Under the pieces are notes generated by a model. It saw only the letters and a list, made by a program, of their open reading frames with translations, was not told where the DNA came from and searched no databases. Position numbers and translations under genes: made by a program. Shown one piece after another: positions 1-50,704 of a stretch of DNA of 64,000 nt (its first letter is position 1; the number at the start of each line of letters is the position of its first letter). The stretch is from assembly GCA_964247055.1 (NCBI GenBank), contig OZ176056.1, positions 7,502,001-7,566,000 on the forward strand, written 5' to 3'. The DNA comes from Paragordius varius (Eukaryota > Animalia > Nematomorpha).

Positions 1-1173
1 CAAATTCGGATAGGTAACAGATCAAAATAACAGCTGATATTTAGATCTAAAATCTAATTTTTTCATAAATTCTAATTTATAAGTTATGCAAATTTAATAT
101 TTGTATTTTGAATCATAATATACATTAATTTTCATTTATATCATGTTATTTTGTGGTAAAAATATATATACTAAAATTTATCATATTTTAATTAATTTAT
201 ATATAAAGCAAATTTTTAATTTACAGCTTTGTAATTTAATATTGGATACAACTATTTCAAAAATTCATAATCAAAATTTCTTATGCATTTAAAACAATTT
301 CCGAGAATATATTTTTGCCATCTATCGCGTTATAAAAAATGATTGGCCATTAAATTTTAAGATAAGTATTTTTACAATTTTTTATATTTCAAAAATGAAT
401 ATCACAGAAAAAATATCATATTATAAAGACAAAAATTTAAGGTCAAAATATTTTTTTTAAAGACGTCCATACTTTTTTTAATCATAACTTTTATATGATA
501 ACTAACCAATTGTTTTAGGTTTAAAAATAGGAATAAAGATATATTTTGTTAAAATTTAAACAAAAGTCACATAGTTATTTTTATAAATAATTGATTATAG
601 AAAATATATATGCTATTTTTTCCTAAAAAATCCTTTAGTTTTTACGTTTTGTTTTTATGATAATGAAATGGTTAAATTTTATTTTTGATATTTTTTAGGT
701 TCTTATCGATTTGGATAAATGATACATTGTACAAAACAGAAAGAATTTTAGTCAAGGATTAAGAAGGGGATTTATACAATGGCCAAATATTGGGAAAATT
801 ATATGGTATGATGTTGAGAAAAATTATAGAATGCGCATTTTTTAATAATTAAATAGTATAACTTTTTGGAGTTTAATATAATGATTACTTTGGCAAACTT
901 CTTGTGGTAATAAAATGGGGTTTTATCATTATGAAATTATAGATTAAATTTTATATACAAGGTAAATTTTTGATTTAAAAAAAATTTAAATTTACATGCA
1001 AAAATTTTTTGGCTACTTACTTCCCTTTTAATTAACTTATCTATTATTTGTTAAAAAATATTTTAAAGCAATTTTTTACAATATACTTTTCACAAAATAA
1101 GATTTTTGCTATTTTTTGTTACTTTGTTTTAAATCGAAACTATACACAATCATTTCATTTTTTTATACAACCA

Positions 1174-1765
1174 CTAGCGTAAATCTCGTGCTGCTACGCA
1201 GCCCGAGGAAGTCCTTCCTTCCGGGGGGGGGGGGGGGGGGGGGGGGGGGCTATTTGAAAAAAGGGACAATAAAATGATCCACATATGTGGATTATTTCGA
1301 AACATTCTTTATTAGCTATGATCTCATAGGAATTTTAAAATGGTGCATTCAAACTAATATATTGTTTACTTGGGGGAAAATAGCAAATTTTTTTGTGGAC
1401 TTTGTTTTTTGAAAAAAATGGCATTTTACGGGGGGGTAAAAGAGGGCCTAAATTAAATAAGCGAGCCGACTATGTTCGGCGCAATCGAAAATAAGTAAAC
1501 AAAAATCATATTTGTTAATGAATGGTCCAACACGTTCTCCGGAAAATTGTCTCAAAGACACGATTTTTGTGGACTTTTGTTTTCAAAAAAAACCCTTTTA
1601 CACGGGGTGGGCCCGAACTGGGGGCCTAATTCAAAAAAGGGCGAAGCTATTGTTAAGGCATTTATTAATGATTATATTTTTTCGACATTTGGATTTGAAT
1701 GGGTCTACCGGTTTTCCGGAAACAGATCACAAAGCCAGCATTTTCCATTTTTATAAATATATAGA
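1174..1765 (-). mobile_element. Non-autonomous Helitron, short subfamily, complete (592 bp)
   Basis: Minus strand starts A|TCTATATATTTATAAAAATGG and ends with a GC hairpin (CTCGGGCTGCGTAGCAGCACGAG) 7 nt before CTAG|T; inserted between A and T with no TSD; sibling at 22661-23242. Confidence 0.85.
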
Positions 1766-1984
1766 TTACCATAAATAAGGTTTAATATCTAACATCCTAT
1801 ACATATGATAGAAATAATAAATAATTATGTATAAAATCAATAAAGTCTGATTGATCATTTGATTGTCTCGTTTGAATATTGAGATAGACAATTTTATTTG
1901 AAATGAACATAATATATTTTTGATTTTATAAGCAATTTTATTATGCGGCACGAAGTTTTTAAATCATTCACATAGTCTCATAAG

Positions 1985-2560
1985 TTTTCTGAAATTTGGC
2001 TCCAAAGGTAGGCTGTATCGATATGATGGCGCAGTTGTAGGCGGGTAGCCCCTTAACCAAAGGCCAATATAAAAATGTAGTTAGATAAAAAATTGCCTTT
2101 ATACCTGGAATCATCGTTCATTCCTAATAGTTTATGGAAGAATGGCTTCAAAACTAAATAATAGTTCAATGATAGCGCATTTTTTAGGAGTAAAGGGCCT
2201 ATATAACGACTAATTTAAAATAACCGCTCTACTAAAATTTTTGACCTTTTACGGGTAATACTTTAAGCTGCTATTGAACTCATATGACCTGATAGGTTTT
2301 CTGCCACAAAAGCACGCTATTTCAATATGACGGGTCAGTTTTTCGCTGGTAGCTCCTTACCCAGCAGCTATCATCAAAGAAACGCTTGACTCAAATTTTT
2401 GCCTTTTTACAGGAAATACGTGGAGTCCTTATGGAAGTTTTACGGTCTTATACCTTGGTCGAAAAATAGATTTAAAAATTATTTTTGTGAACTTTGTTTT
2501 TTTGAAAAAAAGGCATTTTACGGGAGGAGAGGGTAAAAAGAGGGCCCACAAATACATTAT
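1985..2560 (-). mobile_element. Internal fragment of the long Helitron subfamily (tandem subrepeats); duplicated at ~10595-11165 (+)
   Basis: Shares motifs (AACTGCGCCA, GAGCTACCCG, AAAAACTGACCCGTCATA) with 11750-13340; no termini seen; boundaries approximate. Confidence 0.65.
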
Positions 2561-4311
2561 AAATATAAGAAAATATTTTAGTCTTTGGTATATTTTTTAT
2601 TTGAATGAATGCGTTTTAGCAGATTGTAAAATCATTTAACGGCAAATATTTTTCCATTATTTTTTAACAATATTTATAAAATTTTTGAAAATGTAACTAA
2701 TAAAATCGAAAAATCTTATACATGGCAACTGACATATATATTCAATATCTGTTTATAGTAATGTACCTAAAAGGGATGAATTGCATTTTTTTGGCTTATT
2801 ATTTTACAAATATTTTTTGATATAAGATCGTTTTAGAAAGACTAACTACTTTAACACACTCCATTACCTTTCGTGTAGTTTTATATCCCAGAGCGATTTT
2901 TAATTTGAATATCGTAAAAAGTATTTACTACAAATTCAAAAATATGCTTTTTAGTTTTAGGTGCATTATACAAATTTTTTTTTTGAAAATTGTAAAAAAC
3001 TATTCTAAACTTTTTTGCCGCCATATTTTTTCTAAATATTAAATTACTTGCAACAGACAATAATGTGTATTATGGTTAGAAAATGTAAAAATAATTAACT
3101 TTTAAAATCAGGCTACATTTTACCAGCATAAATTTTAGATTTTGTTTTTTATCGTTTATATCGTGTTTTAGGGCTGTCCCAATTTTAGACTTTACAAGTC
3201 ACAAAACTGTAAAAAATATAATCTTTTTTAACTAATACATAAGATTATAACAATGTTTGATTATTAAGTTTACCTAAAACTTTCGCTTTGCGATATAAAA
3301 TTACCCCAAAATGTAAACTAAGACAAAAATTGAAAAGGTAATGGATAGTTAATAAGTAATAAAACAGTTGTGGGTTCATTTGTTTGCGTTTGCTGACTTC
3401 TCAATTTCTTTAATAGAGAATGTATATTAATACCTATTGTTTTTTTGCTTCGATGAAATTATTTGTTTTGCGCATTTTCGAGCGTTTTAACACTTCTGTA
3501 TGGGATGATATTTTAGGGTTGTTTTCCACCCCAGAGCTTCCCATAGATTAAAGCAGTAAACAAACTTATGTTTAATTATAATATCTTCTGCAGTATTTGA
3601 TTAAAAACTCAAGGTTTTTACAATTATCTAACTAGAGTCCCCCAGCTTCAAAACGATTGAAAAGCTGTAAAGGAATAAAAAATTTGTTGGTATTGTAATT
3701 TATCCCGAATAGTTTTTATATTTTTAAACCATATTATACAGTTAATTCTTGTTGTATTCATGCTGATGTTGAAATGGGATTTTAGTTTAAAAAAAATTGT
3801 ACCATCCACCTAAAAGGCTAATTTATGTATTTTAATTTGGCTCAATGCTATATTTTTAAAAAACTTAATTATATGGTGGGACATAATACTAACCCAAAGA
3901 TCATGAAGTGTTAATAAAATATTTTATTGTAAAATTTAAGGCAAACTAATTTAATAAGTTATACAATAATTATTTGTACTGATAATTTACTTTATTAGTG
4001 GATTTGTTTTGCTTAGTTAGCTTTTTTATGTTTGTTTACGTTTAAATTTTTTTGCCTGATTTCGCTAATAGAAGATTTTATTTAGCCTAACCTTTGTATA
4101 GATAATATACTTTTAGCTCGTTCAAAATTATAAGATAGACAATTTTGAGAAATTATACGTGCGTATGTTTACACGTGTAAAAATACGATTCATCCAAATA
4201 AATTAAAAGTGTGTATATATGATATTTCTTGGAAACGAAAAAAATTTAGCTCAAAAGCATTACGTTTGAAATAATATATTCATTTTATATTTTTTTTATT
4301 TTCGCCCCTAT

Positions 4312-13575: not shown

Positions 13576-14358
13576 ATGGGGACGGGAATTACAAAAGTTT
13601 AAGAAGCCCTGCTCTAGAACATCAGTAATCAAATCGCGGCCCACATGGTCATCAAATATTCATTTATTTTTTTGATACACTTATTAAATATATAAATATC
13701 TGAATATGTGTAAGCTGTGCACATGTTGAGATTTTAGAGTGCTCGGATGCTGAGATAATTTTGGTGAGTACTCTGCTCTATAAATAGGAAAACTGCATGG
13801 AGCCTTTTTTAGTATAGAAAATGGGCTTTTAATAAAAAATACTTTCACATATTTACAAGCTTTAGTGTAATAAACCTCCTCAAGACAAAGGTAAGAAACT
13901 CTTAAACATATCAGACATTACTCTCCTTAATGTGTACAATTTATTGGCACTCTGAAATCCTCTATGGCGCATTTTATTTTTGATTAGTTTTCTTTTAGCA
14001 ACAAAATTCTTCATCACTTTTATATAAAAATTTTAATCTGAATATAAATTATATTTCAATTATCAGGGCTATATCTCATTATTTTAAGCAACTAAAACAA
14101 AGTCTCCAATTCATATTTTTTAAATTATTTTATTCACATGATTTTATGTCACTCTCAGTATCAGACGAATCAAAAAACGCGGAACTTGAAAATTTAATTG
14201 TGAAATGGAAAAATGCCATACAAAAATCACTCGAAGATTTAAAAAACATTCTTAATCAAGAAAATGATTCCGGAATCACAATTCAAAGTATGCTAAAACA
14301 ATACAATATAAACCCCGATATAATTGGATATGACATTGAAACTGAAGAATTTATATGA
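13576..14358 (+). CDS. SFR1: SFR1/Mei5-like recombination factor; last exon 14159-14358 well supported; tentative 5' exons 13576-13596, 13618-13647, 13740-13763, 13788-13811, 13866-13890 (107 aa)
   Basis: C-terminal ELENLIVKWKNAIQKSLEDL...TIQSMLKQYNINPDIIGYDIETEEF matches the Sfr1/Mei5 C-terminal pattern (L..LI.KW....Q..L..L ... L..LL.....D...L.YD.E.E.F). Strong donor at 13891 (GTAAGA) with phase 1 matching the acceptor at 14158. 5' structure speculative. Confidence 0.55.
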
Positions 14359-14396: not shown

Positions 14397-17300
14397 TTAA
14401 CTATTCTTCATTGTTTCTAAGTGAACCTTTATATCGCCATAATCTTCGGTATTGAGGAGAATCAAAACCTGTATATAAAACACTTGTATAAAATATTATT
14501 GGATGCACATCAAAAAAATCATTTTTTCTAATAAAAAATATGACATAAAACATTATGAGAGACTCAATTTATGCAGTACTGAAAATTCCTTTATAATATT
14601 TTTTTAATTGACATTCTTTATTGTTTGAACTTTTTTTATCAAAGCAATAGAGTTTATAAAAGATTAATGAGTTTTTAAAATCTTAAAATAAAAATAGTAA
14701 TTCCTCTCCCTTATATCATAATTCCGATTCTGTGAAAAACATATGGCTACTATACACATTTTTAACTATTATAACATTTTAATAATTCAATGGTTATTTA
14801 GTTTTTTTCAATATTTTATACATATATAATTATAATAGATTATTATTCTACTCAACCATTTTTTTAAAAATGATAAAGTTACAAAATTTAATATTTTATA
14901 GAAGAAAAAAAGGCGTACCTTTTCATTAGCCAAAAAAAGTAGAGTGAGAAGTAATATAGGTTCAGATACATCTTGAAACATATTGAAGGTAGACTCATCA
15001 TTTTTAACACCCATATTATCCTTCAATTATTTATATAAAAGAAATAAAATTATTAAAACAAAACATAAAAATTAGAAATAATTTAATTTTGATATACTTA
15101 AATAAATTTTTGATTGCTAAATTTATGATTGAGTTATTATCGATTATTATTCACTCTTAAATAATTCTCACCCTCAAACAATTCAAATTCACCCTAAAAT
15201 TAAATTATATGTTTTCGAGCTAATAATATAACTCATAATACGTTATAATTTATTATTTTTTCAGCATTATATTAATTTTAAACTAAATTTAATTTAAAAA
15301 TAAATAAAGGTAATTAAGTTAGATGAATCTAACGAAAATTCATTAATAAATTTATTATTAATTTGCTGATATTACATTATATCATTCTAAAACATCTAAT
15401 TTATTTTACGGTGTTTGTAATTTAAAGGTGAATTCAAACTGTAAATGTTATAAATAATTGAGTTATTAGCAATTTATATATCTACTCCTTATTTAAGAAC
15501 TAAAATATTTTTTTGAATTTTCACACGATTTGTCTTTAAATTTAAATTCTTACTGTAGATCTTATCGAATCACGTAATCGAGAAAAGTAAGTCGCATGGT
15601 TTAACAAGGGTCCCCCCTTTTCGTTTTCATTTTGATCATCAGGATTCTTATTGACACGGTCAAATTGGGAAAATAAAATCTATAAATACAAACATATATC
15701 AAATAAGGCGTAAAATATATTTAATGGTAAACATAAAAAGGCAAAAAACTGAAAATATTTTACGAAAATCATAAAAATTTGATTAAATTAATATATATAT
15801 GCATATATGTATGAAACTAAAAAATATTGTGTTGAACGTTTTTTAACAACCTTATCCTAACTTTTATTAAATTAATTTAAAAAATTAAAAAAGCAAAAAT
15901 ATGATTGTGTATTTATAAAAAACAGTCTGTCGATTACAGATTTTATAACTTTATTATATATACAGTAAAAATTGAAATGATACGGACAAAACGTAAAATA
16001 TAAAGCCAAATATTTTATTCAAAAAGACAACCATACTTTTCAAATCTTGATTTTTAATATTTAAATAATTGTTAAAAATTGCAAAGTATGGAATAGAGAT
16101 GTATATTGGTAACACAATTAATCATATATTTTATAATTGTAAATGAATCATATATATGGGAAAATTTAAATTTAAAAAAAAAGAAATATTTGTCTTTATA
16201 TGTTTACGTTTTGTCCGTATAATTTAAGTTTTTACTGTAAAACTGGATTCCTATCTATTTTTATCGTTTCAAACTTTAAAATTACTTATATTAAAGGTAA
16301 TATACTTTTCAAATTTTTATGATAAAAAAGTTTAAAATATATATATTATATAAAACATACTGGTGACATGGGGTGTAAAGGGTTTTTATTATTGGAATTT
16401 ATTTCAACATTTTCTTGACTATTTTGAGGAGGGCTTTCCACTAGCAAATTCCTTTTTAAAAGTTCCCACAATCGACGTTTTAGGGCACGCATATCAGTAA
16501 AACGCCGCTTACGTTCATATTGAATTAGGAGATTTTCAATCTGTGCATAAGAAGACAGATAAATTATGAGAAATATACCATTTGCACTTCAAGAGTATCC
16601 TAAAACACTTCAACTTGGTCCTTAAACACTTCAACTTGGTTTAAAATAATAATTTAAAAATAAAAATTATAATTCAAAAATCACTTTTTTGTTTCAAACT
16701 AATTTTTTTTTTCAATTTAACAAAATTATTAACTTTTAAATGTTTTCAATGAAAAATTGTTAATAAGAACCCAATTTTAATTACGTATTAAAATCCTATA
16801 GATATCTAAAACAATTTTAAGAAATTAATAAATATATACGGTTTCTCAATGATTAAAAGTTGATATTGATTTAAAATTTATGTTAAATGATAGAAAATAG
16901 GTTAAAAACGGTAAAATAGATCAATGATATACAATTTGGTTAATAAAAGTTAAAAACTAAACAATTTTAAGGACTAAGTTGAAGTGTTCAAGGACCAACT
17001 TAAAATTTTCAAAGACCAACTTGAAATGTTCAAGGACACTCTTTAAGTGCAATGGTATATTTTACCATGTAAATTTGTACCATTGATCGAAAGTAATGAA
17101 TAAATTAAACTTTTGTGTAATATAGTAAAAAATTTATAGGGATTATCGAAAAAAAGTATATACTATGGAATATAAATAATTATAGTGTCATTTTTTACAT
17201 GAATATATTGAATTTTATGGAAAAGTTTATGGTATAAATAGAATAACTAAAAACTTATATTTAAAATTGTATAACCATATTAAAGACAAAACAACTTAAA

Positions 17301-20300
17301 AAAATAAATAAAGACAAATATTTTTTTTTAAAAGACAATAATTTAAATTTATTTATTAAAATTAGAACTCATTGTTTAAAATTGTGCAAAGTATAAAATA
17401 ATGTATATTCATAATACAATCAATTATGTATATTTTGTCATTTTATAATTAAATAATTTATGTGTAAAAAATTAGTGTTTATAGATAGTATGGTTTCTAT
17501 TTTGAAAAGCAAAGATATTTGTCTATATATTTTTATGTATTGACTGTATAATTTTGAAACTATAGTATTTTTTAACCGTAATCAAAAGGATATACCAAAA
17601 ATTTAAAGATATATAGTGGCTTCAGAAATTTCATTTTTTTTTAGTTTTATAAACTTTAACCTTTTTTAAAATGCGTGTTTTTATAAAAAATTAAAATTTT
17701 TGAATATTTTTAAAATTTTTTTACCTTTCTTGTGGGTTGAAGTAATTCTTGACCCATATACGTTTCATTCATGATATCTAAAAAAATTAATTTTAAATAA
17801 GTTTTACTTTAAGGAAAAAATATTTAATAATAGCTTATTAATTATTCATAAACCTGGAATTTTGTATTTTAAAATGTGTTATGAAACAAAAAAGTAATAA
17901 AAGGCAACGAAATTTTTTTTAAAAAATAATATATTTTTATTTAAATTTACAAACGGGGAATAGAGATAATTTCAGTACTACTGAAATTATATTTTCTATT
18001 CAAAAATAATTTTATATATATTTGCAGTTCAAGAGTGTCCTTGAACACTTTAAGTTGGTCCTTTAACTTTTTTGTTTTTTTTTTAACTTTTATCAATTAA
18101 ATAGTATCATTCATGTACTTTATCATTATAACCTATCTTCAATAAATTCAATATAAACTTTATATCAAGTTATTCAGAAACCTTATATCTTTATTAAGTT
18201 TTTAATATTAAATTTAAATAAGATTTTAGCACGTGTAATTATAATAAAGTTTTCTGGGTTGTTAATTACAATTTTTCATCTAAAACATTTATGTTAAATT
18301 GGGAAAAAATTAGTTTAAAGCAAAAAAAGTGGTTTATAAATGAAAAATCTTTGTTTTTAATATATACAATAAATTTAGAAAATTAGGTTAAAAAACAAAA
18401 AATAAATGCAAAAATTATGGTTAAATCCAAACTTTAAGTGTTCAATAACCTACTTAAAGTATTCAAGGACCGACCAACTTAGACTGTTCAAGGACACTCT
18501 TGAAGTGCAAATGGTATATATCACATTTTACAAAATATTAACTTTTTTACACCAAAAAAATACCATTTTTCTAGATTTTAGATTTCTACTTTATATTTGT
18601 TTTAAAATTATTAGATTATTAATAATTGATCAAAATACCATTGTTTTCAGCTTGAATTGATATATTCTCTGCAATTTGCAGAGATTTATTCCCAGATAAT
18701 TGATTGTTTTGATTATGGAAACTTTCATCATCATCGAAATCATTATTATTTTCGCAATCACCAGTGAAAGAATTATCATTCTTATTATGATTTAATATTA
18801 AAGTTTTTTCGTCGTTTAATATATCCCCTTCGATGTTTTGGTGACTAAAATTTGCAGTTTTAGAATTTTTAATAATTAAATCTTGTTGTTGTAAAGATAT
18901 GTGTTCTAACCATTCATTAGCTAAGGTTTGAGCTAAAATAGATTGAATTTTGACATAAAAATATATAAAATTTTCAAAATTCTAATATAAGCTTAATGAG
19001 AATGTTTGATAATTAAATTTAATAAATTAACTATTTTCAAAAATCTACGGTGTTATGGGGTGGAAAAATTAAGCTTCTAGAGACAATTACCGTTGAAAAT
19101 TAATTAAATTTGATTTTTGAGTTATAATTCTTTGTTTTAGATTGCAGAGTATGAAATAGAGATGTATATCGGTAACACACAATCAATGATATATTATTAT
19201 ATTACAAATGTTATTAAATCATTTTTGTAGTAAGTATAAAAAAGTATAGTTGTCTTTTGAAAAAAAATTTTATCTTTATATATTTTAACAATTAGTTTTG
19301 GCCGTATAATTTCATTCTATGTTTAATGTATTTTTTTTTCAAAAACCACTCTCAAAAACAATTTATTCGTACTTTGTAACAAAGATTGATGTGTCAAATT
19401 TTCAACTGTCAAGGCAAAAACATTGTTTTGAGATGTCCGGAAACTAGTTTTTTCAACATACGTAGTATAATGGAGTAAATGTTCCGTACTATTTAACTTC
19501 GATAAGCATGAGTTTTGATCATTTGATATACTGTTTACCTGTCTTTTATTTTGAGCATTTTGTCGTTGAGTTGATAATATGAGGTTTGTGGTTATGTTTT
19601 GTAATTCTGCAAATTCCTTACGGATTATATTATGGGAGGATTTTTGAGATTGTTGCCCCATGTCAGAAATCTTATATATATATATATATATATGTGTGTG
19701 TAATATATACACTGAGTTGGTCTTTGAACATTTTAAGTTCGTCCTTGAACACTTCAAGTTGGTCCTTTAACTTTTTATATTGTTTTTCACTTTTATCAAT
19801 CAAATCGTATAACTTTCATCTATTTTATCGTTTTAAACCTATTTCCTACTATTTAACATAAATTTTAAATCAATAAAAACTTTTATTCATTCAGAAACCG
19901 TATATCTTTATTAATTGATCAAAATTATTTTGGATATTTATAAAATTTTAACACGAAATTATAAAATATATAAGTTTTCTGGGTTAATATTTACTATTTT
20001 TCGTTGAAAACATTTACAAGTTAATAATTTTGTTGAATTGGGAAAAAATTATTTTGAAACAAGTGGTTTTTTAATTAAAATTTTTTATTTTTAAATGAAT
20101 AAATATATAGTATAGATTAAAAATAATAAAATAAATATGGTTAAATTAAATCTTAAAAATTTTAAAGACCAACTAGAAATGTTCAAGAACCCACTTAAAA
20201 AGTTCAAGGACCAACTTGAAGTGTTTAAGGAGACTCTTGAAGTGCAAATGGTATAATAAAAGTAAATAATAAAAAAATAGTTATTGGAATAAATCGTAAA

Positions 20301-21401
20301 AGATATTTGTTAATTAACGTTTTAGTTTTATTAACAAAAAAATGTTGGTCGCAATTTAGTTAAAAAACTGTCGCACGATTGTGATAAGAGTTATTTTTAG
20401 ACAATATTTTCTAACTTTATTATTAGTGAATCTAATAACTAAGATCTTTGACTTTTACCTTTGATATTTTACCCACAAACTTTCCGAATTTTCATTTATA
20501 TTAAATTTGCAATAAAACATAGTTAAAATTCAATTATTTTTATTTTAATTTGACTTTATTGTGGGATAATTACAAAAATATAAATAAATTTTTATTATTG
20601 AACATAAAATAATATTGATAAAAATCAGTTTTTATCATACAAAATTGATTATATAGAAATAAAAATTTAAAAAACATTAATAATTAAGTAGAGTTTTAAC
20701 TATATGAAAAAAAAACCCATCAAATACAAAGTTTTTACCCTTAAAAAAGCATATATAAGCCCGTCGAGAAAAAAAAACTCAAATTCAATACTTGAAAGCA
20801 TGGCATTAGGGCTAAGCTAAACAATTCATTTTGAATCCGTTTTTCATGTTGATTCCACCACAATAATTTTTCGTTCATTTTAGTTTTATTGGTATAAAGT
20901 TTCGTAGTAATATTATTATTATTATTCGATAACAACATATCGTCATTAAAGATATTAGTTTCATGTTTAATGAAAATTAATGTATCCAATTCAGTGAGTG
21001 GTATTGATTTTTGTAAAAGGCTATTTGCCTTACTTATCCAGTTATTTAACGTAATTTTAGCTAAAACATATAAAAAATTAAATATGTGTGTATGTATACA
21101 GTAAAAATTGGCATTATACGGACAAAACAATATTTTTTTTAATAAAAAAAAACAATCTAACTTTTTAAATCTTGTGATTTATTTGATATAAAACTCAATG
21201 TTTGAAATTATCAAGTATGTAATAGAGATGTATAATGGTAACACAATCATTTATATATTTTACAATTTTAATTCAAAAATTTATATTTTAAAAAAATCGA
21301 AACTAAAAAGGTATAGTTATTTGTCTTTATATTTTTACGTTTTGTTTTCCGTATATAATTTTTACCGCCTTTATATTTCTTTATTTCTAAATAATCCTTC
21401 T

Positions 21402-21432
<31 letters not shown>

Positions 21433-21893
21433 TTTAACTTTTATAATTTAATTTTTTAATACATGTATCGAAAAAAATTTAGTAAAAAATATTTTTTAAA
21501 CATTTTATAATTATTAGAGCTTACGCAGTCTAGTGGTGGTTTTTCCATTTTTGGAGCTATGATATAACGTTTCAAAGTTGGGTTGATTTAAGGCAGGGTT
21601 TTCTAAATGTTTCAACATAACATAAATTCATATACCGTTTACATTTTAAATTTACTCTTAAACAATCCTTGAACAATTCAAATTCTTCCTTGAACAATTC
21701 AAATTATGTGTCGGGAAAATATAACTCCTCATCATTTATATGATATATATTTTTACGCCATAGTTTATTTTTTCAGCATTATATGAAATAATTAAACAGA
21801 ATTTCATATTTTAAAAATAGTATAAAATAAAGGTGAAATAACGCATAATTTTTATTTTAGGGTAAATTTGAATTGTTTAAGGGTAAATTATAA

Positions 21894-30311: not shown

Positions 30312-30346
<35 letters not shown>

Positions 30347-33300: not shown

Positions 33301-35959
33301 TTTATTATTATTATTAAGGTTTTTGAGTCTTTTAATAAACATGGCGTTTGGTATTTAAAATTTTTTTCCTAAACTTTCAATTTAAAAAAGAGTATGGGGT
33401 TGTCTTTTAGAAAAAAACATTTGTCTTTATATTTTCCCGTTTTGTCCGTTGTGGCAAATATTAGTAATAGTTACAAACATTCTCAGCCAAAACAATATAT
33501 TTAAGAAGCACCAGTCAGATTGAAAGGAGAGAGGGATTGAAAAACTTTGACGAATTCACATTCCTTATATCAAGGAAATGACAAGGGTCAAGGTTAATAA
33601 ATACTGTATCAACTTACGAACCTTAATCTGGTCTAAGCGAAACACTAAAAAAACGAATATTGGCCTATGATTTGATTAACAAAACTTCTTCTAGAGAAAC
33701 TTTCTTGTTGGTGATTTTAATTGCCATATTAGTAATGTGATAGTGCAATGATTACCATGGCATTCATGGGGGGGAGGACGGGTGAAAATCTCGATAAGAT
33801 AGGTGAGAGTTTACTAGAATTTTCGCGGAACAAACATGTTCCCCTAAAGCCCATATAAAGTTAGTTTTTGGTTATACTGTATGATCATTTTTTCTACTAC
33901 AAGTTTACTTACGAAATCGTAAAAAGCATTAAAATCTATTAAAAAGTTAGTTCATGCTTTCTATTGTGGAAAAACGATGTGGCTGGCTATTTTAATTTTG
34001 AAAATTGAAATGTGCAGGATCCAAAGGGTTAACTCCTTGTTACGGGGAAAAAAACGCTTAAAAGTTGATAAAAGTTGTTGAAATCAACTCATAACAATCT
34101 TAAAATATCTTGTTGTAATAATTAATTAAGTTACCAACACACATCTCCTCTCTTTTATACTTTGGAGTTTAAAACAAATGATTTATACCCATATATTTAA
34201 AAATCAATCAATTTTAAGAAAAAAATATTTGTCTATATATTATTACGTTTTGTCCTCCGTATAATATCAATTTTTACTGTATTTTCAAAATTTTAAAATA
34301 AAAATGCCGTAAATTTTGCGCAAATTATTATAAATTTTTTAAAAAGCGTTTTTAACATACTTTATACTGAAAAGTTTTGTTACAATTCAATTCTCAAAAA
34401 ACTATAAAATTTTTAAAGGTACTTATGCTATTTTTCTAAAAAATTATATATTTTGAAAAAAGTTTTATAAACAAGCATGCTTAAGTAGTGAAAATTGAAA
34501 AATAAATTATTTAAGTTTCAAAAATTTATACGTTAATAATTTTTACCTTTTTCTTTATTTATAATGAATCTTATAAAAAGTAACTGACAATTTCATAAAC
34601 ATTTGTATAAATTTAATAAAAAAGTGGAAAATTTTCAATTAAAACATTTCATAAGTTTATAAAAAAAAGTTTTTAAGTTATTAAAATTTTTTTTAAAAAA
34701 TAACCCGATTTTTGGCACAGTATGGAGAGCAACTTGAATGCCTCAGAATAATATCCATCAACACGATATGAATATATCTTAGTACTGGCATCAATGGTAT
34801 TGCTAGCTACCTATAAATATATTTATAAATTAAAAATGAAAAATATAAATTTAATTTAAAAAATGAATTATATATTTTTCATTCAGATTGATTTATTTTT
34901 TTTATGTAAAAATCTAAATTCAAAAGATGAAAAAAATGTAAAAACCAGAAAAATAGATATGGTTTTTAAATAGTCATCTATTAAAAATTTATATATATAA
35001 CCTATCGTTTCGTTCTGGATGCCAATATAAGGGTAAAAATAATATTTTACATTAGATAAAATTATTATAATTACAATTTATTTTAACCCTTAATTTTTTT
35101 TAAAAATAATTTAATAAATTATTAAAATTATAAAATATGTATTATATATTTTTTACATATCTTTTCCTTATTTCTCATAATCCAAATCAAGAGGTTATAT
35201 TTAATAGTTGAATGTAAGTTACATAATTTTTACCTGTTTATATATATTGTGTTATATTATCAAACTTTTTTTATTATTAATGGTAAAATTAAAAATTCTC
35301 TAAAAAGGTTTTTTTATAAATAATACAATCAAAATAAAAAACATTAATTTTTAATTATTATAATTTATGTTTCGGGTTTCTACGTAAGGTTTAGACATGT
35401 AAATTAAAGTCATATATTTAACAAATGTATTCAATAAGTTAGAATGTGGTCAGAAATCTAAGATGAATACAAAATATATATCTATTAATTTTTATGTTAT
35501 ATCTTTGATAAATTTGATTTAATGATAATAAAAAGAAGAAACCTGGAAATTGGTATCATTTTGGGATTGAGAGTGCACAATTTGAGACATATAATCAATC
35601 AGATGCAATTTATAAGCATTATTAACATTAACTTTCTAAAAAAATTAATAAAGAAAAATAACGTTTTCGGCGCATAATTTGATACATGTTGCATAATGTT
35701 CAGACATTTCTGTATTACTCATGGTAATTTTATTTGATTTTCTATTATCAATATACAATATATAATCTAACCTTTTGAGTTTAAGAATTCCTGATTCCTG
35801 CGCGCGTTGTAATTGATTAGTATGTCTTTCAATTTTTTCATTTTTATCGTCCGGCCCTTCATCAAAAAGAGATATTTCATTTGTTAAACCGTTTAATTTG
35901 CTTGATATACGTTTTGGTTTTCTTACATCATTCACAATATCTTCCCTTAAAATAACCAT
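14397..35959 (-). CDS. NCAPH: Condensin I kleisin (CAP-H/barren), ~1002 aa; exons 35663-35959, 35543-35635, 34705-34810, 31338-31420, 30699-30773, 29330-29486, 27371-27621, 26204-26495, 24819-24876, 24078-24259, 22135-22293, 20792-21060, 19373-19670, 18639-18932, 17955-17995 (tentative), 16361-16540, 14919-15020, 14397-14468
   Basis: EHYATCIKLCAEN|KVNVNNAYKLHLIDYM, VASNTIDASTKIYSYRVD, IDPLF, DMRALKRRLWELL and LLFLANEK match conserved CAP-H motifs; all junctions GT-AG and phase-consistent (CDS 3009 nt). Confidence 0.93.
15963..16237. mobile_element. Tc1/mariner-type MITE family R3 (CAGTAAAAATTG...TACGGACAAAACGTAAAAATATAAAGAC TIRs, TA TSD), representative copy
   Basis: TA|CAGTAAAA ... TTTTACTG|TA. 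Other full or partial copies near 17300, 19140, 21099, 22320, 23470, 25120, 27660, 28659-28858, 29512-29814, 33400, 34090, 38620, 43600/44200, 52310, 53100, 60060, 61010, 61560-61920. Confidence 0.85.
16578..17055. mobile_element. MITE family R2 (CCATTTGCACTTCAAG termini, 21-bp subterminal repeats AAGGACCAACTTGAAGTGTTC)
   Basis: TA-flanked inverted termini; further copies ~18018-18514 and ~19705-20251, remnant near 21530-21700. Confidence 0.8.
22661..23242 (+). mobile_element. Non-autonomous Helitron, short subfamily, in an NCAPH intron
   Basis: A|TTTATATATTTATAAAAATGG start (TC changed to TT); hairpin CTCGGGCTGCGTAGCACGAG then CTAG|T; homologous to 1174-1765. Confidence 0.85.
23847..24032. 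mobile_element. Near-palindromic foldback MITE family R4; sibling 26571-26743 (TA-flanked); related inner element 52918-53075
   Basis: Arms TATGCATTTTAATGATTGCTTATTTCACACTA...CAGTAGTGTATGGAAAAAA and their reverse complements. Confidence 0.75.
31590..33290 (-). mobile_element. Decayed RTE-clade (RTEX-like) LINE: RT, Cys/His finger insert and C-terminus
   Basis: EITIDEVTTAINKLKSHKAPGP, HQGSDLSPLLF, MLFVDDLV, WVHKKC...FKCLNC, IRPVLTYGFETW and KRRKGRP in broken frames; boundaries approximate. Confidence 0.85.
33500..33835 (+). mobile_element. LINE AP-endonuclease fragment, opposite orientation to the adjacent RT remnant
   Basis: VSTYEP, LVGDFNCHI, HGIHGG.G.GE and GESLLEF-like pieces with frameshifts. 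Confidence 0.6.
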
Positions 35960-36197: not shown

Positions 36198-39100
36198 ATG
36201 GACATTTTAAAAAACGATAAGATTATAAAAACTGCCAAAAATGATTCTACTAATGCTAATTTATTGAATCCAACTAATGATAATAACTCTATTGCGGATT
36301 TTTTCCCGTTGAAAAAAGCGTTGCAACTTACCATAGACTCCTATGATATCACCAATAAAATTAGGCTTTTATATCATCGTGACAGTAGAGAACTGGAAGA
36401 TAAATGTGTTAATAAATTAATTGGAAAACGATCCGTGATCGACTTAAGGTATATTGCCATATACGTTTTATAGACGTAAAGAACAAATGGATATTGAAAA
36501 TATGCTATATATTTTACAACATAATTTGGAGCACATCTTAACCAACATTGAAAAAACGGATCATGTAAGCAAAAATTATATTTATACCAATTTTTTATTA
36601 TAATATGATCATTTATCTGATTTAGTTATACCTCCAAAAAAATTTGTTGAAACAACATCTTGCTCAATCGATTCAAAATTATAAAAAGATCTTAACTAAT
36701 ATCCGGGATCTTTTATCAACTCAAGACACATCATCATCCACATCTACTAATTTACCTGAATCAAATACTGTAACTCGCACCATCACCAGGAGTTTGAGTC
36801 ACATTCAAAGTTTGACTTGCCCAGGTTTGCCCCTTTTTTGTGCGGTTTTTTACAGCTTATTTTAAAAATATACCATTTATTTAAATTCGATTTTATTTAG
36901 AGGAGATTCCATTCAATTTGGATTATATACGGATCATGGAAGGTTTGGAGTCTTGTTTAAGGTTTCACATTGAACAAGATGGCGCAAATAAGCAAAAGTA
37001 AAAATATGGCTTTTAACTAAATGCATTTTCTAATTATAATTATATAGTTTTTTAGTCCAAAGTTTTTTAGTATTCAGCGATAAAACTTGATTCTAAATTT
37101 ATTTTTCAAATTATTAATTTTTATTTAGATTAACCCAAAATTAAAGTTCTTATCGTGAAATCTCGGCTTTCTTGCGTTTTATTTAACGTTAACCCGTTTA
37201 GTATTAAAGGTGTGAAGCTTTCTGTTCTCATCATTTAAAATAATTAAACGACCCTTTATTATTTTTGAAACAATAAATAATAAATGCTGCATTCGTGTAA
37301 TCTTCTCTATTTTTTAAAGAAGTCCGCACAGTAGTTATTTTAATATCTTATTAAAACTTTAAAAATCTTGATCCTTTTCCCACTAGGATAGGTGTAAAAA
37401 AGTGATATCTTATCAGTGTGCATATATATTAAAAAATAAAAACAAATAGTATTCGTTCGGCTGGTATTTAGGCCGATAGTCGCCCATTATAGTTGGTAAT
37501 ATTTACAATTAAATCACACTTGCTTGTGAAAGTGGGTTAATGATTTTCCCAAAAAAGTGATTTTGAATATTTATGTAATATAAAATTTCTTAATTTATAT
37601 GTTTAAAATTTTTGACACTGTAGAATTGCAAAATTATCTGAAATGGTGAAAATCGCTCCCAAATCATACCCGATCCCTGAAAATAAAAATGTCGTTAAAC
37701 CAGAGAGTATAATTAATCAGCCAGATATCATTGATCAATTAAAGTATATTCTTAAAATTGCGGAAGCACTTTAAATTAAACATTTTTACGATTTTTTCAT
37801 ATTTTTTATAAATTATTTTACACTTACTTCAACCTTAGAATATCGCAGCAGAACAGCGAAAGTCAACTCCTATTAGATAATTATATGTTGGAGAGAATGA
37901 AAAGCAAAAATTTAAAATGGCCCTTGCCTCCTTCCATGGTATATTAGTTGTAAAAAATAATTAATTGTAAGATAGGATTCAAATAGTTAAGTTTGTATTT
38001 CTCTCCAGATTTTATAACACTAATTTCTACATGATAAGGAAAGTAAAAATATAGTTAGTTATCTAATAAAAAAACGTCATTTTTAGCTAAATAGGGCTGA
38101 AAATAAACTCAGCCATATTTATTTTTACAAAAAGTTTTTCTATAAATTTAGATAAATATGGAAAACAAAATCAAATTTATTTTACGAGAATTAAATGAAA
38201 CAAAAACACTCAATCAGGAGCTACAAAATCGTATCAAAACTATGACGGATGTTGAGAAGCAGGCTCATAAAGCCTTAGATATACTAGGAATGAAATGTAT
38301 GAGGTCTGCCATGGTCAGAACCAATAAAAATATGCATTCCATAGAATCTGCTCAAAAAAAGAAAAATCTAGAAAAAACTCATGATCCCAATAAAAATAAT
38401 TTAAATGATAATGGTAGCATACCAATCCTATATAAAACATCTTTGAACGATGGTTTAAATTCTAGCTACCCAAATGCCATCGTAATGAAACAGAGTAATT
38501 TAAAAGATGACACCTCTTTTCTAACATGTGACAGTAAAAATGATATTATCTCAAGTAATTATTAAAAGCAGATTGTCAAAAAACGGTTATATTTCACCAA
38601 AAAAGTCTAAAATTAAATCACTGTAAATATTGAAGTTATACAGAAGACCAAACGTAAAAATATAAAGACACATGTTTTTTTTAATCTGGTATTTTTTTCA
38701 TTAAATACAACTCATTGTATTAGATTGCAAAGTATGAAATTATGTAAATTGGTAACATTATCAATTATATATATTTGACAATTGTAATTAAAGTTTTTAC
38801 ATAGGAAAAATCAAAGGGTAAAAGAATGAGGTTTGGTTGTTTTTGGAAAAAATATTTGCCCCTATGTTTTAACATTTTATATGTGTGATTTGACCAAGAT
38901 TGCCTTAACTTAGATGCGACAATGGATGGATCAACTTTGAACACAATCAAAACTTTGGAAAATTGTCAAAAAAAGACTCAACAACAAAATAGCGTGAAAG
39001 ATAATACAAGTTTAACAGCCAAAGAAATTGGTAAAAAACTTACATTATCTTCATCAACGAATCATCCCATTTTCCCACAGAATATTAGTTTGTTACAAAA

Positions 39101-42100
39101 GATTGAAACACTTACAAGTCTGATATGTCACCTCATGTACCGAAGAGGGATAGATAGAAGGGTACATCATCTCTCTTTTTAGATTTAGCCCGCCCAACGT
39201 CCATAAATGACTACCTACATTATTTAAACGAATTTAACCAGGGGTGTCCAGCACTAATGATTTTTCCGGTCGTATTTTTGACTCAAAAAACTCGGCTGGT
39301 CGCATTTGAAATACATATATGGGCATTCATCAATAATGATATTGGATTTCAATCTAAAATTGTAAAAACACATGTTTCGTTACCCATTGGATGAAATAGA
39401 CTAATTCAAAAAACTTGTTTAAGAAAATCAATATATTTCTGTAAGATCATATTTTGGCGAATTTTTGCGGGTCGGACATTAAATCTCGACGCATGTAATA
39501 TCCCTGATTTTAACTTTAAAATAGCAATCGGACAAGCTTATAACAAGCATGAGCCAAAGTATTGAGGCGCTCGCTGCTTTTTCAACGTCTGTAAGGCTAA
39601 CAAGCTTAATTTTGCTGTATTTCTTAATAATATGAAATTTTTATAAATTTAAATTCCGCCGGTAATGAATAAATAGATTGTCATTTTTTTAGAAAACACA
39701 AAACATATTTTTTCGCATTTTTTTCCATAAAGCACCAGAACAGATTAAGGATATTAATTCTACATTAACATTCAATTATATTGACTGGATCGTTTATTCA
39801 AATTGGGCTCTTTATTTATTTATAAAATCACATTCACCGTATTCTATACTGATTTAATCCCTTAAGTTTTTAATTTTACAGTTGTGTTTTAATTAAAGGC
39901 ATGCCTCAAAATTGTTTGTGGGGTGTATCCAAAATAACTAAATATATCTCTAGGACTGTAATAAATATTTTATTAAATGATTATTACAGTCTTCATAATA
40001 TGCAGAACAAACCCCTGTAATTTCACTAAAATTAACAAAATTATTTTTGAAAAAAATGAATGAGTTAACATTATTCCAAATATATAGTTTTCTTGTGGGA
40101 ATTTAAATTATAGTTTGCTTAAAATGGTTAATATATGCAGAATACCTTGACTCAATCCCAACTAGTGAATGATACGTTGAAACGGCACACCAATTTGTTA
40201 AAAAAATATTCACTCCTTAAAGGCTACATCAAACTCCTGCAGGCAAATTTAGCCGGTTTCACTCAAGATTGGTGTATCATGGATAAAAAATTCAAGGTAT
40301 CAAACAAGAAATAAGTATTATTGAAAAATTTAACATGATGTATATAACGTGTTTCAAATTTTGAGATATGTTGAGTTTTGACTGCAAATATTTGCCTTTC
40401 ATAACTCCAAAAAATTGGGGGTCAATTGGCAAAAAAATTATGTAAAAATTGCGCACACCCAACGTAATTACAAAGATTTTTGCCCGAATAATTTTGGTTT
40501 CAATTCCATAGTTAGTCAGTCAAATGGTTTTTTTTCGGTGTTTGCATTTAAAATAGGTGATATTTGATGTGGCTTAAATAAGGAATATGGTTCTGGTATC
40601 AATTCTCATACAAAATTTTTAACTTAATTTAGCCTTATCCATATATTTTATTTGATGCTTTGCGATAATAATTTTAATGCAAACCCTAAAATCGATTTTT
40701 GTAAAAATATTACAATTTTTAACCTATATTTGTTGGTTAATATTGTATCTATTTATCATTATAATATTAAAAATATCATTGTATAGTATATGAAATAATC
40801 AATATGCTGATAATCAGCTGTTAACCATTTTTTGCTTCTCCTATATGGCGTTTGACCTTAATTTTTTAAATAAATTTACGCCAAAATATTTTTTAAAATA
40901 TATATACATATGACTAATGTAGGAAAAACTTGAAAGTATAAAACCTGAACATATGTCCCCAGAAATTAGGGATTTGTTAAAAAGTCAAAAAAGCTTACAG
41001 GATTTGCAAAATGTTGTTTCACACGATAAAAATTTATCATTGATGTCTGATGATCCTAGCAGCCGAACAAAAATGCAGGTTTAAATATATATATATATAT
41101 ATATATATATACACCATTTACAATTCATATTCACCCTTGAACAATTCAAATTCACCATTTTATTCAAATTCACCCTTAAACAATTCAAATTCACCCTAAA
41201 AATAAATTATGTGTTTTCGAGATAATATAACTCATCATAAATCTGAATATATTTTTACGAGATAGTTTATTGTGTTTTCAATATTATATTAATTTTATAC
41301 AGAATTTTATATTTTAAATATATTATAAAATAAAGGTGATTTTAATTTTAAAAAAACACATAGTTTATTTTAGGGTGATTTTGAATTGTTTAAGGATTAA
41401 TTTGAACTGTGTAAATGGTATATATTTTTACAATTAAATTAATTTTGGGAACAATTATATGAAAAAGTTAAAAAAAATATTTTTAAAATTTTTTTGCAAT
41501 AAACTTTAATTTTATAACACTTTTGATCAGGAATGCAGCAGTCAACCAATGGCAGAAACGCTAAACGACAATCAAATTAACTCTTCTCTCTATACAATTA
41601 ATACAAAAAATACTGATACATACTGGACTGAAAATTTAAACACCGTAAAGACAAATTATTCATTGAATTATTTATTAAAATAAAAAAATATTTGTTTCAA
41701 TTTCACCCTTGAACAATTCAAATTCACCCTAAAAAATATGAAATTTCGGTCTTATATAACTCATTATTAAAATTAAATATATTTTCTTCATGGCAAAGTT
41801 TATTAATTTATTTCAATATTATTTTGATTATATACAAAATTTCTTATTTTAAAAATATAAAAAAATATATTTTTAATCTTAAAAAACACATAATTTATTT
41901 TAGGGTGAGTTTGAATTGTTCGAACGTGAGTTTAAATTGTTCAAGGGCGAATTTGAATTGTTTAAGGGTAATTTTGAACTCTAAATGGTAAATATAATGA
42001 ATGGCATTAAATTTTTATATTTTTAGTCTTGTACATCGATAAAAAGTGATTTGGATTTAGCCCCAAGTGAAACATACGTTCCAAAGTTGGTACAAAACAT

Positions 42101-44227
42101 TAATTATAATTTGAAAGATCCACAATACCTGAGCAAAAACAATACTTTTGAATACCTAACAAATAATGATACCAATAATTCTAATTTTAATGTTAATTCA
42201 AACTATATCGTCACCAATAACTATGCCAAAAATGAAAAATTAAGGCCTAAAGGATCAAACCTAAATCTTGATCATGATAATTGCTTTCAAGAGTCCACAA
42301 AAACTGAAAAATCCGATTTTTTTAATTTTTGGCAGGATGACATAACTCATGAAAGTAAGTTTAAAAATTTTAAATTTCCAAAAATTAAGCATGTTTAGAC
42401 CTTTGGGTGCTTTATTGGCCTACCTAGTATAGGCGAATATTTAATAATATTTGAGCGTTGCATTTGTTGAAAAATTTGTAAAATGTTCCCATTTTGGGAA
42501 TTATTCATCGCATCGCTCTATATTTGAAACCTTAAAAATTAAAATTGAATATTTTATGTTAGGGGTGTCGACCACACGGCCCAGAAATTGATTATTAATT
42601 TACTTAACAAATTTTTAAAATACTGTTTCCAAATTTAGAGGCAATAAAGTTCCAAAAAATTTTAAAATAAATAGTTGACTTTTACAGTCCTATGGTAAAA
42701 ATTATATAAAATATTTGTTAATGCACATATATTTTCAATGCGTCGCGCCAATTTTGTTTGTTTTGAAAATGCGGCCCGCGAAGCCATTTATGTTGGGCAC
42801 CCTTGATCTAATATAATGTTTTAAGAAATATATTTTCCCTTTTTAACATAGATGGGAACCGAGTCTTTTTTAGGAATTAACCAAAAGAGCGTTTTAATAA
42901 TTCCAAAAAAATAATTTAAAATTTTATTTTTTTTGAGCATGTTTTATTTTTTGTTCTTCATGGCATTTAGTAAACTTTGTTAATTTTCTTAAGGGAGCCA
43001 AAATAAGAAGCAATCTTATAATAAATAAATTTATTGATCATAACCTTTTAGTTGTAGATCCTTAATCCTACGAAAAAGTGAAAACAATTAAATTTTTGCC
43101 AATTATCTATAAAATTTAAAAACATATAATTTATTATGGTGTTCTGCTACCAGATACAACCTTAAGTACAATTAGTATGGTAATGAATGAAAATCAAGAT
43201 GTCTCAGCCGGCACTTTAAATTCAGATCTAACATCTATGGACAATCAAAGCACTCTGGTTTCCAATCAAAAAGAAATTATTGATCTATATAATATCGATA
43301 TAGATATGAATGATGAAATAACTCTTAAACCCAAATCGGACCTTAGCTTTAACAATATGTAATAAGCTAATCATATTTGCTTTATTTTCATTTTCAGTAA
43401 AAATTGAAATTATCCAGACTTAATGTACCTCATTAAATTTTCGTTTCATAAAGCCACCTAGCGTTTAATAGGAAGTACTATGACTTCTAATTGCAAAGGT
43501 AGCCTAAGAAAATGATCTTCATTAAGGTTTAATTTACTATAAAGATGGCGCTTTCCTCCATAAATATGTACAACATACAAACATAATGACAATAACTTAT
43601 ATTCAAAACATCGCGATACTTTTAATATACAATTTATCGTTTCCACTGCAAAATATGTAATATAGATGTAATTTGGTAACATAATCAATTATATATTTTA
43701 CAACTGTAAACAGTCCAATACCTTTTGGGTTAGTTTTATATCCCAGGTATCCTAAAAAGTATTTAAGGCGAATTTAAAAATATGCTTTCTTTACCCTTTT
43801 AGGCGCATTAGAATTTTTTTTTTCAAAAATTAAAATTGTTAGAAAATCCCTATTTTAAACAGTTTATTTTAGCACCAAACTTGATACATTTTGTTAATAT
43901 CAGCTGTTCTTTCAGTCGCGTTCTGGAGCTGTCCTCAATTCAGACTCTAGAAGTCATACTGTAAAAATATAAGCTTTTTATCTAATATATAAAAACAATG
44001 TTTGATAATTAATTTCAACTAAAAAAACTTTCAAAACTGTAATTTATTTACCCAATTGTGCTCTGGAATATAAAATCACCCCAAAAGGTAAAATAGGACA
44101 AAAAAGTGAAAAGGTAATTAAGTGTTAGATGGCTTTTCTAGGGAAAATATAGGGTGTAAAAAGTCGTTTGAAAAAGAAAACATTTGTTTTTATGTTTTTA
44201 CGTTTCATCTGACTACTTTCAATTTCT

Positions 44228-44271
<44 letters not shown>

Positions 44272-44638
44272 AAGTCCACAAAAAGTGGTTCAAGCCCCAA
44301 GCCTTATGTCAATTAACGATAGTTTGGCTCTGAACGAGTGTGTCAAAAGTCCTACCTTTCAAATTCGTAGTTCTTCTCTCAAACAGAAACCACAAGAACC
44401 TTTAAGATATTATAGAAATTCAGATCTTTTGTCGAGCAATTCCAATATATTAAACAAATTAAATAGTATCCAAAATATTAAAAATGAATCTCAAATCCCC
44501 AAAAATAATCCAAATGCCAGAAAACAAACAAAAATTTTGAATGGTAAAGAAATGCAAGTTATTCAATCCATCATAAATACCACTCGATTTGATACTAATA
44601 ACAATAAGGGAACCCGATCATCTAAGCTGGGGAATTAG
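36198..44638 (+). CDS. Uncharacterised ~943 aa protein (helical/coiled-coil-like N-half, Asn/Ser-rich C-half); exons 36198-36448, 36474-36564, 36626-36824, 36901-36997, 37624-37743, 37839-37938, 38152-38554, 38914-39161, 40141-40296, 40923-41078, 41531-41644, 42027-42354, 43154-43358, 44275-44638
   Basis: 13 GT-AG introns, all phase-consistent, CDS 2832 nt; incorporates seven of the provided ORFs. No family recognised; the 39161 donor is less certain. Confidence 0.75.
39239..39506. mobile_element. hAT (Charlie-like) MITE, 8-bp TSD aatttaac/attttaac; same family as 47069-47343
   Basis: CAGGGG...CCCTG termini; internal sequence matches the reverse complement of 47280-47340. Confidence 0.75.
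41114..41418. mobile_element. MITE family R1 (CCATTTACAATTCAAATTCACCC termini, 21-bp repeats AGGGTGAATTTGAATTGTTTA), representative copy
   Basis: Other copies ~15160-15450, 21640-21890, 24345-24600, 27905-28160, 30395-30652, 41690-41990, 51415-51636 (TA on both sides), 58356-58607, 61215-61535; often next to (TA)n runs. Confidence 0.85.
42560..42805. mobile_element. hAT-type MITE remnant
   Basis: TAGGGGTGTC ... GGCACCCTTG termini and a GCGGCCCGCG subterminal motif; TSD not resolved. Confidence 0.55.
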
Positions 44639-48911: not shown

Positions 48912-49335
48912 TAATTTATCGGACATGTTTTCATTTACCCTTCATTAATTTTAGTTTTTTAGCCATAGCGAATTTATATTCAAAATTTTAAAAATTACTA
49001 TATTGAGCCTATTGTAAAAAGTCATCTAGCCCATTGAGTTGGTTATTTAAAAAATATCTTAAGATTATTATAATGCTACATTTGAAAAGCGCTCAATTGA
49101 TAATTACACCTTGATTCAAATATGGGTAGATGCCGATCCTAATGTTTTGCTGTTACTGAAAAATACTAAAAAGGGCCTCAATTAATATATGCTCTCTTAA
49201 TAAAAATAATATGAATAAGCCAAATTCCATTATTAAAATTTAGTTTTGAAAAAAGCTCCAATCTCTTACAAAGCCCTTTTTTTATAATTCCTAATTTTTT
49301 TTTGAAATCACACTATTAATATCGAAAAGTATTAA

Positions 49336-49904
49336 CACTTGGATGCAACATATTCATTTTAGTCCTTCGATTCAAATGGATGTGGTTAAATACCCCAGGC
49401 CTGTTTAAAATTATATTCTATAAAAAATCTGGATGGAATCAAAACCATAGCAAAATTTTGGACTTATATAACATTAATAAACCGAAATGTATAAAAAACC
49501 TAATTCAAAAATACTTTATTTTACTTATTTTAAGCTAAAACCGAAAGGTAATAATTTAGGCAACGTAGCATGTGTGCAATGGTAAAAATAAAAAATAATA
49601 CAAAATAACCCTCTTTTTCTATAATGTTAGATGTAATTTAAATAAAAAATTTTAAATTTACCCTTAAAATTAAATCAATACGATATTTTGCAAAAATTTT
49701 GTAAAATAAAAATGGCTTTGAAGTAATTTGACATGGATTTTTTTACAAAACAAAACTTTATTTAGATATTTTGGTATAAATATAAAATTTTTATTAGGAT
49801 AGAAGCATAAGTTTAAATTGGGACCGTTTCCTTCAGTAGTTTTCATAAAATCCTATATCAAATTTAATCTGAGGTATTTATATACCCCAAATTAAATCGA
49901 AGGG
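49336..49904. mobile_element. piggyBac-like non-autonomous element, TTAA on both sides
   Basis: TTAA|CACTT ... GAAGGG|TTAA. Confidence 0.65.
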
Positions 49905-50128
49905 TTAAAAAGGCTTAAGATTTAAATTTGCCAATGCGCCAATGCCTACTTATTTTTGCCTTCAGTTAATTTTTTAAATATAATTAAATTTTACATGAAA
50001 TTTTTAATTTTGGTGCTTGCAAATTTGCAGAGTTTTAATTTTATCCTTTTTTGTATCCTGCCCATTTGAATTAGTCAAAAATTATCAAATAAAAAGTTTG
50101 TAACATCAGCAACAATTATATATAACAC

Positions 50129-50164
<36 letters not shown>

Positions 50165-50704
50165 CTTCAAATTTATTTATCTTAAGTGTGCCCCATACCA
50201 TACTTGAAAAATCTTCAAGTTTTACTTGATCATATGATTTTTTATCACCCCAGCAGGTTTTCTTGTCTAATTTAAGTCCCGTAATGTTAAAAATTTTTTA
50301 TCATAAAAGAGCTAGCCATGACTTGAAAACCGACAAAACTCAAAAAAATCTTACCTCACCCAATGTGTGGGATTAAAAATGTAATAATAATTGACAAGTA
50401 ATAAAAAGATACTATCAAAAAAAGGTTTAAATTATATGCTTAAACATCTTTTCTAAAATAATTTATAAGCTCTCTAGCATATTATAATTATTAATACGCT
50501 GGGTTTTAGTGATTAAATTTACTTCAGGGTTAAACTTTATGTTTACAAACTTTATCTAATCTATATTTTTATATTTCCAAATATGTTAAAAATATTTGAG
50601 ATTGATTGTCACTTTTTAGTTATCGGTAATTACCTAGTTTCAGCTGGCAATTATTTAACACCTAGATATATCGTAATCCGCAACAAAAAATAAAAAACGC
50701 TTAA

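Follow-up and report, generated by a model that had tools for sequence, protein, structure and literature searches.

Putative 24–30-nt introns beside multi-kilobase introns in a repeat-rich, most likely nematomorph, stretch of DNA

Genes of the window

The stretch of DNA analysed here (the window) is eukaryotic and 64,000 nucleotides (nt) long, has a guanine and cytosine (GC) content of 26% and carries genes in which putative introns of 24–30 nt, the subject of this study, stand near the 5' ends beside introns of several kilobases (kb). The gene content was established by single-exon searches (Pfam), which revealed NCAPH (Pfam Cnd2), SFR1 (Mei5), an ENTH-domain gene and a leucine-rich repeat (LRR) gene. 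The gene models were built from open frames with GT-AG joints; the joined translations were used for frame checks only, and the family searches were done exon by exon. NCAPH (condensin H/Cnd2; 14397..35959, minus strand), which was recognised by Pfam Cnd2 on single exons, has 23 exons that encode 1,095 amino acids (aa), and its frame is open from start to stop with GT-AG ends at 22/22 introns, of which the first two measure 30 and 27 nt and the rest 440-3,284 nt. An orphan gene (36198..44638, plus strand) with 14 exons and 943 aa likewise has a frame that is open from start to stop and GT-AG ends at 13/13 introns, which measure 25, 61, 76, 626, 95, 213 and then 359-979 nt. For this gene, family and homologue searches found neither a family nor a homologue, and the gene was not present within 10 kb upstream of NCAPH in the nematomorph Gordionus. 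Its exon at 38152-38554 probably encodes a coiled coil. NCAPH and the orphan gene are arranged head-to-head with their start codons 238 nt apart (35960-36197), and three micro-introns (30, 27 and 25 nt) fall inside 840 nt around this shared promoter region. The SFR1/Mei5-like gene (13797..14358, plus strand), which was identified by Pfam Mei5 on its last exon, holds a 54-nt intron (13812-13865) and its 5' structure is uncertain. The ENTH-domain gene (epsinR/CLINT1-like; 50705..63213, plus strand; Pfam ENTH) has 11 exons, 686 aa and 10 introns, with an open frame and GT-AG at every joint; its first intron measures 72 nt (50749-50820), the rest 308-3,539 nt, and its model contains no micro-intron.

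The sole match of the NCAPH first-exon frame among 1.84 billion representatives was a protein of Gordionus sp. m RMFG-2023, and the Gordionus NCAPH scored 282 bits on the window as compared with 96-142 bits for three other NCAPH proteins. Moreover, SFR1 lies tail-to-tail with NCAPH both in the window and in the Gordionus locus L001. The closest orthologue, the common introns and the gene order suggest that the window most likely belongs to Nematomorpha, though not to that Gordionus, a placement that is based on scores and synteny. Single exon frames of NCAPH and SFR1 gave no match in a length-limited database, which says nothing on full-length kin. The NCAPH model of the window is 1,095 aa long versus 870 aa for the Gordionus protein; its middle exons (26496-16541, minus strand) show poor alignment, and only the open frame guided their modelling. 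At low depth, the stretch also turned up in sequencing runs labelled as five different organisms, a pattern that would be compatible with a parasite within host samples. In one of these runs (X5), a low-depth 90-nt contig differs from the window (35856-35885) at three amino-acid-changing sites in NCAPH exon 1, all to A, which may be an error or a second haplotype.

Tiny introns near the gene 5' ends

The three complete genes of this one window (NCAPH, orphan and ENTH) have 45 introns in total, for which the intron statistics were calculated. Three introns measure 25-30 nt, four 61-95 nt, one 213 nt and 37 at least 300 nt, with a median of 626 nt. The original prediction that tiny introns lie near gene 5' ends beside multi-kb introns was borne out, as the three are intron 1, 2 and 1 of their genes (permutation P=0.0003 for introns <35 nt); 5' clustering was also found for all of the introns <100 nt (permutation P below 5e-6). 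The intermediate introns that it had listed (54, 61, 72, 76 and 95 nt) and those of 0.3-3.5 kb exist as well. None of the introns <300 nt carries repeats of the window, whereas many of the long ones are 15-89% repeat. Two of the long introns have reverse transcriptase remnants: NCAPH intron 4 (3,284 nt; 31421..34704, minus strand) has that of a decayed retroelement (RVT_1, E 1e-15), and intron 4 of the ENTH gene (3,539 nt; 53859..57397, plus strand) that of a decayed long interspersed nuclear element (RVT_1, E 3e-20).

The best-supported case is the 27-nt GT-AG intron 2 of NCAPH (35636..35662, minus strand; phase 0), which contains an in-frame stop and had been among the best examples of the original prediction. 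At the same codon and in the same phase, there is a 45-nt intron in Gordionus and one of 910 nt in the hemichordate Glandiceps. The exons beside it map precisely to residues 56-81 and 82-113 of Gordionus, and its removal joins 81|82. Its GC content of 11% is below that of 99.9% of the coding windows, and without splicing NCAPH stops at 104 aa, ahead of the Cnd2 domain. By homology, this predicted intron is real. Thirty nucleotides are predicted to be removed as intron 1 of the same gene (35742..35771, minus strand; phase 2), which the original prediction did not include. This GT-AG segment is in frame and stop-free, and its R|KSNK site (55|56) is occupied in Gordionus by a phase-2 intron of 45 nt. 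Glandiceps has a 2,743-nt phase-2 intron 29 residues before the CAEN-equivalent site, compared with 26 residues in the NCAPH of the window. As this case shows, tiny introns that are in frame are easily missed.

The 25-nt GT-AG intron 1 of the orphan gene (36449..36473, plus strand; phase 2) shifts the frame and contains an in-frame stop. It is the best GT-AG join between the exon 1 and exon 2 frames (score 12.8 vs 3.4 for the next), and its removal opens the 943-aa frame, which otherwise stops at 91 aa; the claim that had been made for it holds on these grounds. The start could lie in exon 2 instead, but ATG frames that reach the length of orphan exon 1 arise by chance at a rate of only about 0.025 per kb.

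For the SFR1-like gene, where one 24-nt intron had been proposed, we found two GT-AG candidates of this length on the plus strand. The first (13764..13787) lies upstream of the ATG at 13797, probably in the 5' untranslated region, and has a G|GTGAGT donor and a TAG end. The second (13891..13914), which is located in the 5' part of the gene, is in frame and stop-free and has a splice score in the top 0.3% of background spans. Both have a G|GTRAG donor with YAG 24 nt on, and two such segments in a given 250 nt are expected by chance at about 6e-5, a value for a region that was picked after seeing it. The strong donors thus favour the proposal; however, neither segment is required, since SFR1 models with open frames exist without either of them. 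The 5' region gave no alignment to Gordionus, in which SFR1 (L001 53373-53787, minus strand) is absent from the called genes and contains GT-AG segments of 35, 41 and 87 nt. Taken from the sequence, it is plausible that both 24-nt candidates are real introns. Accordingly narrower than the 19-33 nt first proposed, the supported range of the class is 24/25-30 nt.

All five of these segments have GT-AG ends and a major-type donor and acceptor context. The splice signals of the four that were scored fall at the 19th-71st percentile of those of 42 long introns; the fifth (13764-13787) is the one with G|GTGAGT. Neither an RTATCCTT donor nor a TCCTTAAC branch, which would mark U12-type introns, was found in the five sequences. 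An origin from introners or miniature inverted-repeat transposable elements (MITEs) is also not indicated, as the NCAPH sites are ancestral and the tiny introns are without repeat coverage.

It could be argued that such segments are artefacts, whether longer introns that collapsed in the assembly, lesions of pseudogenes or GT..AG spans that arose by chance, and this does apply to the weak cases that are described in the last section. In the window, each kb of strand contains 23.6 GT..AG spans of 19-33 nt, and without a splice-score threshold, 35-37% of random single-base indels are "rescued" by one of them. Since such spans are frequent and repair about one in three random indels, restoring the frame does not by itself argue for an intron. 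As an account of the 24–30-nt introns, however, we regard artefact as highly improbable. A 151-nt DNA record from an independent study spans the 27-nt intron with zero differences, and because it carries the same 27 bases, this intron is not an assembly collapse, the alternative that the original prediction had itself raised; for this intron, artefact is refuted. An independent run matches 228 nt across the 25-nt intron, again at the same genomic length, with its sole difference falling inside the intron (weak alone, about 11% by chance). The 30-nt segment and both 24-nt segments are not spanned by any independent read record. Furthermore, the 8.2 kb of coding sequence in the three genes has no other break, and homologous positions cannot be chance.

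Origin and splicing of the tiny introns

Because they have ordinary GT-AG signals at ancestral sites, the tiny introns look like shrunken major-spliceosome introns. We therefore consider it likely, judging from the sequence, that they are ordinary U2-type introns at ancestral positions and that their shrinkage to 24-30 nt may have taken place in a single hairworm lineage, in which one spliceosome would use both recognition modes. Promoter-proximal introns would be recognised across the intron, with the 5' site, a branch A at about 7-11 nt before the 3' end and the AG acting as a compact unit with little polypyrimidine tract, and deletion may have driven them down to a lowered size floor. At this size they would be too small as a target, or too constrained, for transposon uptake. 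Later introns would have taken up MITEs and retroelements, grown to 0.3-3.5 kb and come to be recognised across the exon. One spliceosome in both of these routine modes would be enough, with at most modest changes near the active site for a lariat loop of 15-20 nt. With the hemichordate as the outgroup, the reduction to about 45 nt or less probably took place before this lineage and Gordionus diverged. As far as two genes show, either further shrinkage in this lineage or re-growth in Gordionus may have followed.

Several points weigh against this explanation. The 30-nt intron could be read as 10 extra residues if it is not removed, and the orphan and SFR1 cases are without homologues to compare. 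The search of RNA runs found none that contains the locus, so splicing is deduced here from DNA; the four independent runs over the locus show no splice joints and behave as DNA. Five candidate introns are too few for deriving a branch motif, and no spliceosome gene or small nuclear RNA (snRNA) is encoded within the window.

The introns may also be real and need a specialised route, in line with the stronger form of the original prediction, such as lineage-specific changes of the U2 snRNA, of U2AF/SF1/SF3b or of the branching factors (Yju2, Cwc25, Isy1), or a devoted pathway of the RBM17/SAP30BP type. A distance of less than 20 nt from the 5' site to the branch is far below what model animals splice, which favours such a route. 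Stentor has diverged regions in its branching factors (PMC9505925), and human short introns can reportedly depend on RBM17 in place of U2AF (PMC8363638). On the other hand, the five candidates are without a distinct motif and their signal strength equals that of the long introns, no gene for such a factor lies in the window and myxobolids keep canonical U2 and U2AF (PMC13644364). We consider a specialised route unlikely, and similarly doubtful is the more specific proposal that the lineage changed its spliceosome (the U2 snRNA linker or the branching factors), so that one machine splices the 24-30-nt promoter-proximal introns and the multi-kb introns of the same transcript. Nothing in the window shows altered splicing factors.

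Since retention of the tiny introns would give early stops (27 and 25 nt) or small in-frame insertions (30 and 24 nt), they could be 5' expression valves that are real and inefficiently spliced. The crowding of three of them around the shared NCAPH/orphan promoter agrees with this; NCAPH, however, has an essential housekeeping role, and neutral shrinkage accounts for the pattern with no need for regulation. Microsporidian tiny introns splice at about 25% efficiency according to work cited in PMC13644364. Altogether, we find regulation of this kind improbable.

Comparable introns are known from other parasitic animals. Myxobolids splice introns of 22-27 nt and keep the U2 branch-pairing region and U2AF1/2, as was revealed in a study that covers 51 genomes (PMC13644364). 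Introns <30 nt in animals have been published only for myxobolids and Dicyema (PMC13644364, PMC6543705; two lineages as of PMC13644364, 2026). Like those of Henneguya, Thelohanellus, Myxobolus and Dicyema, the introns described here are AT-rich GT-AG introns at conserved positions (22-30 nt in this group) with a weak polypyrimidine tract. In the compact genomes of these parasites, the median intron itself belongs to the tiny class (22-27 nt); here, that class comprises 3/45 introns, is confined to the 5' ends and occurs in a repeat-rich ecdysozoan. Genome-wide miniaturisation, with a median <30 nt, is thus not indicated by the median of 626 nt over the 45 introns of three genes in this one window. 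Flatworm microintrons (Opisthorchis and others, PMC6530080) resemble the present case in their architecture: a short class clustered at the 5' end and a kilobase class occur together in a large genome, a unique motif is missing and intron definition is the proposed mechanism. The fluke peaks, however, are at 37 and 90 nt, whereas the introns found here measure 24-30 nt, below the supposed 30-nt floor; the flatworm-type 5' architecture is a resemblance, not common ancestry. The precedents given in the original prediction were incomplete in that they omitted both the myxobolids (PMC13644364) and the flukes with their 5'-clustered microintrons (PMC6530080). The Trichomonas type A/B introns (PMC12316389) also form two length classes in one nucleus, one of them at 23-28 nt, but Trichomonas is unicellular and intron-poor, its long class is <=196 nt and it has a strict fused branch/3' motif. 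Stentor (PMC9505925) similarly forms tiny lariats, but it is unicellular and has only tiny introns. A further comparison is with Gordionus montsenyensis (L001), which is of the same phylum and has the same intron sites, NCAPH-SFR1 arrangement and short-first/long-later pattern; its two NCAPH sites hold 45 nt and its SFR1 GT-AG segments 35 and 41 nt, in contrast to 27-30 nt here. Two nematomorph genome papers make no mention of introns, and a limited literature search found no report for the phylum.

What is new here is the predicted occurrence of sub-30-nt introns in a repeat-rich ecdysozoan genome, with two homology-anchored cases (27 and 30 nt). If true, introns <30 nt would be known from a third animal lineage, which would be the first among the ecdysozoans, and extreme intron shortening would be set apart from genome compaction. 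Since the introns at these sites measure 45 nt in Gordionus, the determinants of minimum intron length could be tested by comparing two related spliceosomes. If the spliceosome itself had changed, this would be the first case of an animal that combines a bulky genome rich in transposons with introns below the 30-nt floor, and a close relative (Gordionus, 35-45 nt) would be at hand for locating the responsible changes. In practice, gene prediction programs that apply the usual minimum intron length would cut NCAPH and the orphan gene short, and the 30-nt intron would enter the predicted protein.

Short spans without support and other features

Four of the seven lengths listed in the original prediction (19, 21, 23 and 33 nt) were not supported owing to weak scores, the lack of a rescue or because they were not needed. 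As only lengths had been given, the segments for 19, 21 and 24 nt were assigned by inference and those for 23 and 33 nt by the ends of the range noted. For the 23-nt segment (729-751, plus strand), 26% of the background spans score as well and removal yields no long frame. It sits in a decayed coding exon (697-830, plus strand) with a one-base shift plus a stop; the translation of 697-849 is one that we take to resemble the parvin CH1 domain, which homology and domain searches did not confirm. The 19-nt segment of the LRR gene (4578-4596, plus strand) restores the frame but scores below 42/42 real long introns, and one additional base would account for the shift equally well. An alternative 19-nt segment (36943-36961) is not needed for the orphan frame: because run X5 has a G insertion after 37203, which is echoed by a loose end in run X8, the region at 37.1-37.2 kb is argued to be intronic, and this makes the 19-nt intron unnecessary. 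The 21-nt segment (39162-39182, plus strand) forms the first part of orphan intron 8 (979 nt); its removal leaves a stop one codon on, and the frame stays open when the exon is joined directly to 40141 in phase 0. A further 22-nt segment (5215-5236) would need a 10-nt microexon, and a direct join appears, by eye, to keep the LRR frame. The 33-nt segment (50322-50354, minus strand), on the strand divergent from the ENTH gene, has a strong donor and a weak AAG acceptor, 19% of the background spans score as well and no gene was identified for it. In the surrounding region (50160-50360, minus strand), two strong donors are spaced 5 nt apart and there is a frame of 46 codons; this may be a small gene or an untranslated region that has gone unrecognised.

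Among the repeats of the window, broken frames at 45400-46600 (minus strand) resemble, by eye, a remnant of a hAT-type transposase; Pfam gave no match for the one frame that was tested. A diverged inverted duplication (1385-4573 / 9355-11770, 92-94% identity) carries a second, truncated copy of the LRR 5' end (9293-9616, minus strand), and its breakpoint near 4573 is directly beside the LRR frameshift at about 4580-4600. The same repeat-rich block also contains a direct 1.1-kb duplication (8244-9354 / 11410-12527) with 97.6% identity.

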